From the NCBI RefSeq assembly GCF_016432865.1, contig NC_067401.1:481492001-481555759 (forward strand): DNA of 63,759 nt. The letters run 5' to 3'. The stretch is from Antechinus flavipes. Taxonomy: Eukaryota. The position numbers and the translations under genes were made by a program. The notes beneath the pieces were generated by a model. It saw nothing but the letters and a program-made list of their open reading frames with translations, ran no database searches and was not told where the DNA came from. This document shows positions 56,901-59,900 of this stretch, piece after piece (the first letter of the stretch is position 1; each line of letters opens with the position of its first letter).

Positions 56901-59900
56901 TGGGGACTGAGGAGAGAGTCTGCCAGAAAAGGGCCACCTGGAAATGAATCGTGGCCCAGCAGGGAGGGAGGCCCCTAGGGGCAAAGGGGCCCTCAGGTGG
57001 GAAGCTCTGCAGCCATAATAACCCCACAACACGACCTGCAGCCAAGGGCTTGCTAACCAGAAAGGCCGTTCCAAATGGAACAATTTGCCCCCTTGCTGTA
57101 GGTCTGTGAGCAGAGTCTGAGTAGCCCCTTGGGGAGGATGTAACAGGGGAGCAGCTGTGGGCTGAATGAACTGGCCATTGGGGCCCACGCCAGCCTTAGG
57201 GGTCTGCGGTCCCAAAGGCCTGGCTGCCTTCCTGGAAGGGATGGCTGTATAACAGGAAGCTGCTCTGTGACCCCCTGCCCAGCCCCTGCTCTGTGGCCTG
57301 AAACTGCTGTCTAGAGGTAACTCCTGAGGGGGAGGAAAGGGCAGAAGGGCCTAGAATCCCCCTTGAAGGGGTCAGCCCAAGCCCAGAGTTAGGATGGTCC
57401 TGGAAAAGCCCTGGAAATCTGCAGCCTGTGACCTTGCAGCTCTGGCTCACCTGCTGCCTCTCAGGCCCCGAGCTCTGCAGAGGCTGGCAGGAAGTCAGAG
57501 GAAGGGCTGACATCAGGGCCGGAGAAGAAGCAGGGGGGAGAGGCTGTTTGAAGGTGAAAGTAGCCCCCAGTCCCGGGGGTGGCTCCTGGGTTGGGTTCTT
57601 CACCTGTGTCCTAGCTGGCCTTAGCCCAAGGAGAGCCTGCTGGGAAAGAACAAGAATGTCCAGCTCTGAATGCGAAATGACCAATTTTGGACACAGTGGA
57701 AGAAAAGGGCGACTCAAACCGATCGTCCGCTGACCCACCAACTTTATGTCCCTTATGGGAAAGAGAAGGAGGATTGTGGACAACATCGCCAAGCGTTTGA
57801 AGAGCTCCTTGGAGAGGAAACTCATTGTCCGCTAACCCCCCCAACTCTTGACTTACGTCCCTTCTGGGAGAGAAAATGAGGATTTTGGACAAGGTCACAG
57901 TTGGAGAACAGCACTCGCATCCCTGCGCATTTGAGGGGCCGTACCGGAGTCTGTGAGGGGATGTCTCTCTGGTCTCCGTGACGCCCGTCCTGGTGCACCT
58001 TCCCAACTATGCAGCATCCACACCGCCACATCCCGCTGGAGGCAGAGGGGCGCAGAGAAGGGGAAAGGGGAGAGCCCATTCACGGGTGCCCCCAGCGCCC
58101 CTTCCTCCCCAAGACTTCAGGAAGTCTAGAAGTGCCACTTTTTGTCATAGATTTATAGTCTCAGGGATGGCTGGTTGGGACCCTTTCCCAAAAGAAACCT
58201 CCTTAGCAGACTTTCCCTATCCTGGCAAGCCTCCTCCGAGCCTTTCCCAGCTTATTCATGTCTCCAGACTGGGATGAGCAGGGACCCGGAGGGGTCCAAC
58301 CAGAACAAAAGCCAGCCGGACGTTTCTTCCCTGGTCCTGCTCCCAGCCCATCTTTAGATGAGCTCCCCACAGGCTTCCTCCTGGTCCTGGATGCTGTTCT
58401 GCTCTGGATGCAGCTGACAAGCTCCCCAGCTCTCTCACTTGTCATTTCACAACCTGGGGGTCTGTTGTATTGCTTGCTCTTCCTCTGCCTCCCAGCCTAG
58501 TTTCCTTAGATGAACTCCCTGTACTTTCTAGACAAGATGGACAATGGTCCAGCTAAACTTCCCGCCCTCTGGTTGGGAGATGGATTATAAAATGGCCTTG
58601 CCCAGATGCCCCAGGACCCCACCTGCACGCCAATAGTGGACAGGACCGTGGCTGGGGGGAACATCTTACCCCCCTCCATTTTCCTCCTCAGTAGGATGAG
58701 GGGTATGAAGTCTGGGGTTTACCTTGAGTCCCTGAGCATGGAGGCCTTAGGTGGGCTGACCTGGTAAGCAGAGCCCAGGCTCTTACCCAGGATCCCTTGG
58801 CTCTTACCTGGGATCCCTTGGCTCTTACCCGAGATCCCTTGGCTCTTACCCGGGATCTCTTGGCTCTGACCCGGGATCCCTTGGCTCTGACCCAGGATCT
58901 CTCGGCTCTTACCCAGGATCCTTGGCTCTTACCTGGGATCCCTTGGCTCTTACCTGGGGATTTCTGTCAATGGCGGCTCCAGGCAGGCCAGGTGGAAGGC
59001 CCGGGGACACCCATCACAGCAGATCAGCTCCCCACCATCTCTACATACAGCACATTCATCATCATTTTTCTAAAGTGGAGGGACCAAAATGCCAGGGTGG
59101 GGCCAGCTCCATACTCTCCCTCCTTCATCACAGGTCTGAGTCGGAGACCCCAGTCTGATGGGGCCACCGGGCCATGGCAGGCGGCTGTTTCAGGGCTGCC
59201 CAGGCTAGCTCAGATGGTTTAAGGGGTCCATCTCACCTCCTCCCCCACCCGGTGAGCCACGTCCCTGCTTTTCTTCTCTCCTGTGCCCACCAGCTTGCCT
59301 CAGTCCCTTCGGGGTCTTCCCAAAGCACAGTGAGCTGCTCACACAATCGTGTTAATGACGCATCCCCTCTGCCCCCCCACAGGTCACAGAATGTCAGAGT
59401 GGGAAGGAACCTCCTTCCAAAAGGGGTCACCGGGTGACCCCCCAGCCTCCACTTGGAGGAGCCACTCACCTGCTTCTGATCACTCTGAGCCAGTTCTCAG
59501 TGTGGGAGGGTCTTTTCTGACATCCAGGCTAAAGCTCCCCACCCCCATCCCCTCCAGGCCTCTGGCTCTGCCTTGGGAGGGAGTTAGGGGGCAAGAGGAC
59601 AAAGCTGCTCCCTCTTTCCAATGCAGCCCCTCAGGTACTTAAAAATGGCCATCCATCCAAATTAAAGGCTGGGTCTCCTGGAGGATGGGTCTGAATTCTG
59701 TTAGTGGCTCCTACCTGGCCATTCCTCACACCTGAACTGCCCCCATTTCACCTCAGGCTGGGGCTGGTGGCCTGATGGTTGGAGCTGGGAGAGGAGGGGG
59801 AGAAGGGGCAGGAAGGGAAGGGGGATGGAGTAAGCCTGTCTTTACCTGGTGGAGGTGCAGCTCTGGGGGCTGGGCTGGCCTGGCAGGCCCACCGCTCTGT

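Follow-up and report, generated by a model that had tools for sequence, protein, structure and literature searches.

Minisatellites that repeat a 5' splice site form a described class. Borensztajn et al. (2006; PMC1557585) define it as minisatellites whose first monomer lies over an exon/intron boundary and whose donor is repeated in the intron. IVS7 of F7 has a 37 bp unit present in five to nine repeats, and only its most upstream donor is used. The pseudo-sites that follow are functional yet silent, becoming active only once the upstream sites are destroyed. Raised to a consensus value of 91 they still do not compete; perfect-consensus pseudo-sites, and only these, did shift splice choice. 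Removal or addition of monomers (up to 12) leaves the choice of donor unaltered and mutation of the G triplets has no effect. When the first site is lost, inactivation of the pseudo-sites raises exon skipping (all in PMC1557585). A later review (PMC6627357) gives the same reading of F7.

PMC1557585 also cites arrays in other genes. Intron 2 of IFI6 (6-16) carries 25 pseudo-sites, the authentic donor and the two nearest pseudo-sites being used (Turri et al. 1995, as cited there). In IVS13 of CBS, a 31 bp unit is present in 15-20 repeats, and the authentic donor is used together with two pseudo-sites (Yang 2000 and Lievers 2001, as cited there). The title of Lievers 2001, as it stands in that reference list, links the CBS VNTR to reduced enzyme activity. 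For the 100 bp repeats of LMNB2 and the 81 bp repeats of PDGF, the same source reports use of the authentic donor only. A related line of work by McCullough and Berget (1997, 2000), as cited in PMC1557585 and PMC1779574, attributes to G triplets an influence on the choice of 5' splice site; the title of the 2000 paper speaks of an intronic enhancer that binds U1.

The array at the exon 8 donor of AIRE

The window, which is the whole stretch of 63,759 nucleotides that was analysed, carries AIRE on its minus strand from about 63720 to 53893. Its recognisable exons, read singly, are all open and the gene looks intact. AIRE governs the display of self-antigens in the thymus; its effects are sensitive to dose, and PHD1 truncations can be dominant in people. 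Exon 8 (59069-58954, minus strand) has an AG acceptor at one end and a CAG/GTAAGA donor at the other, the slash marking the exon/intron border. Its length and phase agree with those of human AIRE exon 8. Its translation yields a 38-residue peptide, the first half of PHD1, plus two bases. Among solved structures this peptide matches the AIRE PHD1 chains 2kft and 1xwh best, with 35 of 38 residues identical and E about 2e-21. The gene segments and the array are the following.

58954-59069, minus strand: AIRE exon 8, 116 nt, starting in phase 0 and ending with two codon bases (AG), from translation and PDB match
58036-58953, minus strand: AIRE intron 8, 918 nt
57945-58035, minus strand: AIRE exon 9, 91 nt, which finishes the split codon AG-C and continues PHD1 (GMWRCGCC...)
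58778-58958, minus strand: 21-nt minisatellite, eight full units (the second of 20 nt) and a partial ninth, from Tandem Repeats Finder

Tandem Repeats Finder returns a single array at 58778-58958, with a period of 21, 8.7 copies, 88% matches and a score of 271. The original prediction had described nine 21-nt units, one of them of 20 nt. The 20-nt unit is present, but the ninth is not complete: after eight full units only its first 9-10 nt (GTAAGAGCC) are kept, followed by unique intron sequence. The array had also been extended to 58960, which is too far, its register opening at 58958, 5 nt inside exon 8, with unit one straddling the exon 8/intron 8 border. With up to 3 mismatches allowed, the unit occurs 6 times in the window, always within the array, and 0 times in shuffled sequence. 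A literature search returned no paper describing a minisatellite in AIRE itself, and the plus-strand ORF running through the array (58797-59219) had no scoring match in a search of a protein collection.

The palindrome GGATCC is present in every unit and may favour slippage. Each unit also contains a core complementary to U1 and either one or two G triplets. Selection against decoys would be expected to concentrate the differences between units at donor positions; the raw counts are 11 of 72 at donor positions versus 5 of 96 at other positions. These differences amount to few events spread by duplication, with GTC in two adjacent units and CGG in three, and two of the positions form a CpG. Minisatellites are found elsewhere in the window, at 2345-2718, 11568-11802, 36876-37223 and 42170-42380. 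The four have units of 37 nt (10 copies, 95% matches), 17/35/69 nt, 85 nt (4.1 copies, 97% matches) and 66 nt (3.2 copies). A window so rich in minisatellites fits a mutational rather than an adaptive origin of the AIRE array.

The donor and its copies are listed below with U1 duplex energies in kcal/mol, which are model figures computed against the 11-nt U1 5' end.

58948-58956, minus strand: authentic 5' splice site CAG/GTAAGA (-3 to +6), 8 of 9 consensus positions, U1 duplex -11.0
58927-58935, minus strand: decoy 1 (+21), CAG/GTAAGA, 14 nt identical to the authentic site, -11.0
58907-58915, minus strand: decoy 2 (+41), TGG/GTAAGA, -9.2
58886-58894, minus strand: decoy 3 (+62), TGG/GTCAGA, weak, -5.1
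58865-58873, minus strand: decoy 4 (+83), CGG/GTCAGA, weak, -6.2
58844-58852, minus strand: decoy 5 (+104), CGG/GTAAGA, -10.3
58823-58831, minus strand: decoy 6 (+125), CGG/GTAAGA, -10.3
58802-58810, minus strand: decoy 7 (+146), CAG/GTAAGA, 14 nt identical to the authentic site, -11.0
58781-58789, minus strand: decoy 8 (+167), TGG/GTAAGA, in the terminal partial unit, -9.2
58950-58952, minus strand: in-frame TAA, read with any downstream donor (AG-G TAA), the frame ending ...TEIPR, stop

The original prediction described these copies well. A GT is kept in every unit, as it had stated, eight copies following the authentic donor (G coordinates 58953 for the authentic site, then 58932, 58912, 58891, 58870, 58849, 58828, 58807 and 58786). 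The two decoys that it had called identical to the authentic CCCAG/GTAAGAGCC, at +21 and about +146, do match it over 14 nt, and the remaining ones divide as announced into GG/GTAAGAG (four) and GG/GTCAGAG (two) forms. By predicted U1 pairing the decoys are strong donors, two of them equal to the authentic site and four at -9.2 to -10.3 kcal/mol.

Exon 8 ends in AG, so every later donor reads AG-G TAA. The predicted stop within PHD1 is found at 58952-58950, after a frame that ends ...EIPR. This TAA lies upstream of six exon junctions, among them exon 9/10 and four more. Under the 50-55 nt rule, a stop that far upstream of a later exon junction makes a transcript a substrate of nonsense-mediated decay (NMD). 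Since exon 9 (91 nt) and further exons follow the TAA, decoy-spliced transcripts would be NMD-competent by this rule, in agreement with the earlier view of the stop as a typical NMD trigger. The anatomy of the array, the stop and the strength of the donors are established.

The array in related organisms

The locus (53800-61600) is present in 20 runs from seven organisms, coded A to G; none of these 20 runs is recorded as RNA. Contigs from four organisms (X1, X3, X9 and X13) were compared over 57900-59300 and the array is found in all four. X1 is the closest (0.84 of words). Its independent contigs equal the window over 58864-58949 with zero differences, the 20-nt unit included, which confirms this unit. 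Deeper in the array the X1 contigs break and variant unit types map to 58831-58858, so the interior of the X1 array differs from that of the window. Just upstream of exon 8, in intron 7 at 59084-59202, X1 has two alternative contigs, one of them free of differences and the other with a gap and 3 differences, in what looks like a heterozygous stretch.

X3 contigs cover 57900-58898 and 58926-59300 and are unbridged; the third unit, where the contig ends, has diverged. X9 is represented by many short contigs, whose summed depth reaches 278 at 58840-58886 versus about 40 in the flanks, about sevenfold, pointing to a far longer array in X9; summed depth is not a copy number. X13 (organism G) is the most distant, with about 5-9% substitutions in the aligned pieces, and a single 5058-nt contig bridges its entire array. 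This contig follows the exon to 58920, adds three letters, takes up 58958-58927 again, adds 27 letters and then continues from 58625. On the gene strand the CCCAG/GTAAGAGCC type of 21-nt unit occurs three times in full, followed by a terminal partial one, with four GTAAGA in total and nearly perfect donor copies. X13 lacks about 58768-58640, as reconstructed from the contig alignment. Elsewhere in its intron 8, at 58210-58264, 53 nt are swapped for 316 other letters, by insertion or replacement.

The unit count given is that of X13; in X1, X3 and X9 the contigs are broken within the repeat. These breaks could point to an assembly artefact, with the repeat collapsed or falsely expanded. Such an artefact is extremely improbable in view of the independent X1 contigs that are exact over 58864-58949, of the two stretches spanned by X3, and of the X13 contig that bridges the whole array in one piece. 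That four organisms carry the array, and that its length is different in one of them, is established. The comparison of array length across related organisms that had been proposed does reveal a difference, X13 having about three full units and a partial one versus 8.7 in the window.

Being common to the four organisms, the array is older than their split, and its length differs among them. The decoys found in X13 indicate that decoys and gene have coexisted across about 5-9% sequence divergence. The decoys are kept in all four organisms, but they belong to a repeat that homogenises, and the differences between its units are few, non-independent and in some cases at CpG. The near-perfect decoys lasting in X13 can also be read as a sign of maintenance.

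Splice site choice and AIRE dose

We favour the hypothesis that the array is a largely neutral, lineage-specific donor-reiterating minisatellite, of which the first donor is used, the copies are mostly silent and the length drifts without setting AIRE dose. We assign it a probability of roughly 60%. Both the donor in use and the neutrality of the array are what we infer from the evidence discussed below. In an ancestor of these marsupials, a 21-bp segment over the exon 8/intron 8 border would have been duplicated in tandem by slippage or unequal exchange, with later expansion and contraction. The spliceosome would pick the first, most upstream donor, by 5'-to-3' scanning or on a first-come-first-served basis during transcription. 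Exon definition would pair the first donor to emerge with the acceptor, and commitment would occur before the copies compete, with a lower accessibility of the later copies perhaps helping the authentic donor. A small leak, likeliest at the identical +21 copy, would meet the TAA at once and be removed by NMD. The length of the array would drift, leaving AIRE dose unaffected.

As AIRE looks intact and the array is old, exon 8 must be spliced mainly, and productively, at its authentic donor. F7, LMNB2 and PDGF, in which only the upstream donor is used according to the account of PMC1557585, provide a precedent for silent copies in AIRE. Two properties of the locus argue against silent copies. 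The 21-nt unit is short, and the short-unit arrays of IFI6 and CBS use their two nearest pseudo-sites in the same account. The AIRE donor (8 of 9 consensus positions) is also much stronger than that of F7 (value 74), and perfect-consensus sites did shift splicing in F7.

Predicted RNA folding and accessibility lend minor support to use of the authentic donor. The opening costs over -3 to +6, which are thermodynamic predictions only, are lowest in full context for the authentic site (3.2 kcal/mol versus 5.3-8.8 for the copies, the +21 copy being at 7.2). A co-transcriptional approximation gives 4.7 for the authentic site versus 5.5 kcal/mol for the +21 copy. The array RNA is predicted to fold much more stably than shuffles (z -4.8), its ends pairing together in the MFE fold. 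One further segment was considered.

58760-58768, minus strand: U1-like CTTACCAGG, directly after the array, in inverted repeat I4, complementary to CCAGGTAAG donors and resembling the U1 5' end

Its candidacy as a conserved element was rejected, for it lies within the stretch of about 58768-58640 that is missing from organism G (X13).

The co-transcriptional opening costs, together with the 14 identical nt that decoy 1 shares with the authentic site, are compatible with a constant small leak, in which a few percent of transcripts use the +21 and perhaps the +41 decoy at any array length. Such transcripts would be cleared by NMD at a mild fixed cost and would have no regulatory role. The 21 nt of the AIRE unit fall between the 12 nt of the IFI6 unit and the 31 bp of CBS. 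Both of these arrays use their two nearest pseudo-sites according to PMC1557585, which makes a small leak at +21 plausible. F7, LMNB2 and PDGF are, in the account of PMC1557585, without such use. As a full explanation, a fixed leak is possible though rather unlikely.

The original prediction had gone further, proposing that competing decoys divert AIRE pre-mRNA into unproductive forms and that array length acts as a heritable dial on dose. For this, the decoys would have to capture a substantial share of the pre-mRNA for NMD and the number of units would set the productive share. The +21 and +146 decoys identical to the authentic site, the four other strong decoys and the TAA immediately after the end of exon 8 would suit such a dial. 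So would the differences in length (about 3.5 units in X13 versus 8.7 in the window, and a summed depth of 278 versus 40 in X9), and the proximal pseudo-sites used in IFI6 and CBS together with the CBS title on reduced enzyme activity, as cited in PMC1557585. However, in F7, the best-studied array of this layout, the number of units has no effect on donor choice and the pseudo-sites are silent (PMC1557585); the intact state of AIRE and the age of the array also speak against a dial. IFI6 and CBS, as summarised in that paper, use the two nearest copies only, so farther units would add nothing to a dial. We judge a dial of this kind improbable. That a length-dependent share of AIRE pre-mRNA goes to NMD in these marsupials, with 3 to perhaps 30 units resulting in differing AIRE dose, appears very unlikely.

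If length-dependent NMD were nevertheless true, AIRE dose would vary between species or individuals, and with it how strictly the thymus enforces self-tolerance. Built-in unproductive AIRE transcripts, if real, would be of true interest given the role of AIRE in self-tolerance. This marsupial group is studied for tolerance of transmissible tumours.

The array could also act as a splicing enhancer, its U1-binding copies and G triplets recruiting U1, marking the intron and strengthening definition of the short PHD1 exon. The G triplets and U1-complementary core of every unit are consistent with this role, as are the modulation of 5' splice site selection by G triplets (McCullough and Berget, as cited in PMC1557585 and PMC1779574) and the rise in F7 exon skipping as pseudo-sites are inactivated after loss of the first site (PMC1557585). 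But the authentic AIRE donor is already strong and would need no help, the mutation of G triplets in F7 changed nothing (PMC1557585), and copy number varies widely between organisms, a range that gives no hint of a tuned element. The narrower idea of G triplets as an intron mark, plausible from the cited work, was set aside, their mutation being without effect in F7 (PMC1557585). An enhancer role is improbable.

Comparison with described arrays

The AIRE array belongs to the known F7 IVS7-type class and is a new example of it; the mechanism is not new. Its units are minisatellite-sized, its first monomer spans the exon/intron border, its donor is repeated, and its copy number varies between organisms. 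F7 has the same border-spanning first monomer, the same order of an authentic donor followed by pseudo-donors and a likewise variable copy number. Use of the pseudo-sites leads to non-functional transcripts in F7 and would do so in AIRE, and F7 has five to nine identical donors in all. The two differ in unit and donor: 37 bp with a weak donor TGG/gtgggt (value 74) in F7 versus 21 nt with a strong CAG/GTAAGA in AIRE. The silence of the F7 pseudo-sites is an experimental result; that of the AIRE copies is a prediction.

GYNGYN tandem donors (Hiller et al. 2006, PMC1779574) resemble AIRE in having close competing donors, and some cases, in which a stop is inserted, are candidates for NMD. Unlike AIRE, their sites are 3 nt apart in one motif, with no array and no length variation (PMC1779574). 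LMNB2 and PDGF, as they are summarised with F7, also repeat an exon/intron junction within the intron, with far longer units than AIRE. CBS shares with AIRE a VNTR at an exon/intron border, and the title of the Lievers paper conveys the same idea of a dial as the original prediction. CBS is polymorphic in people, and two of its pseudo-sites are in use, according to PMC1557585.

IFI6, as summarised there, is like AIRE a short-unit array with many donor repeats. Its two nearest pseudo-sites are constitutively used. In IFI6, use of the pseudo-sites adds in-frame residues, whereas use of an AIRE decoy would mean an immediate stop. The AIRE locus offers a natural test case for the choice of the spliceosome among identical strong donors 21 nt apart, a spacing that falls between the arrays with silent copies and the arrays that use their nearest copies.
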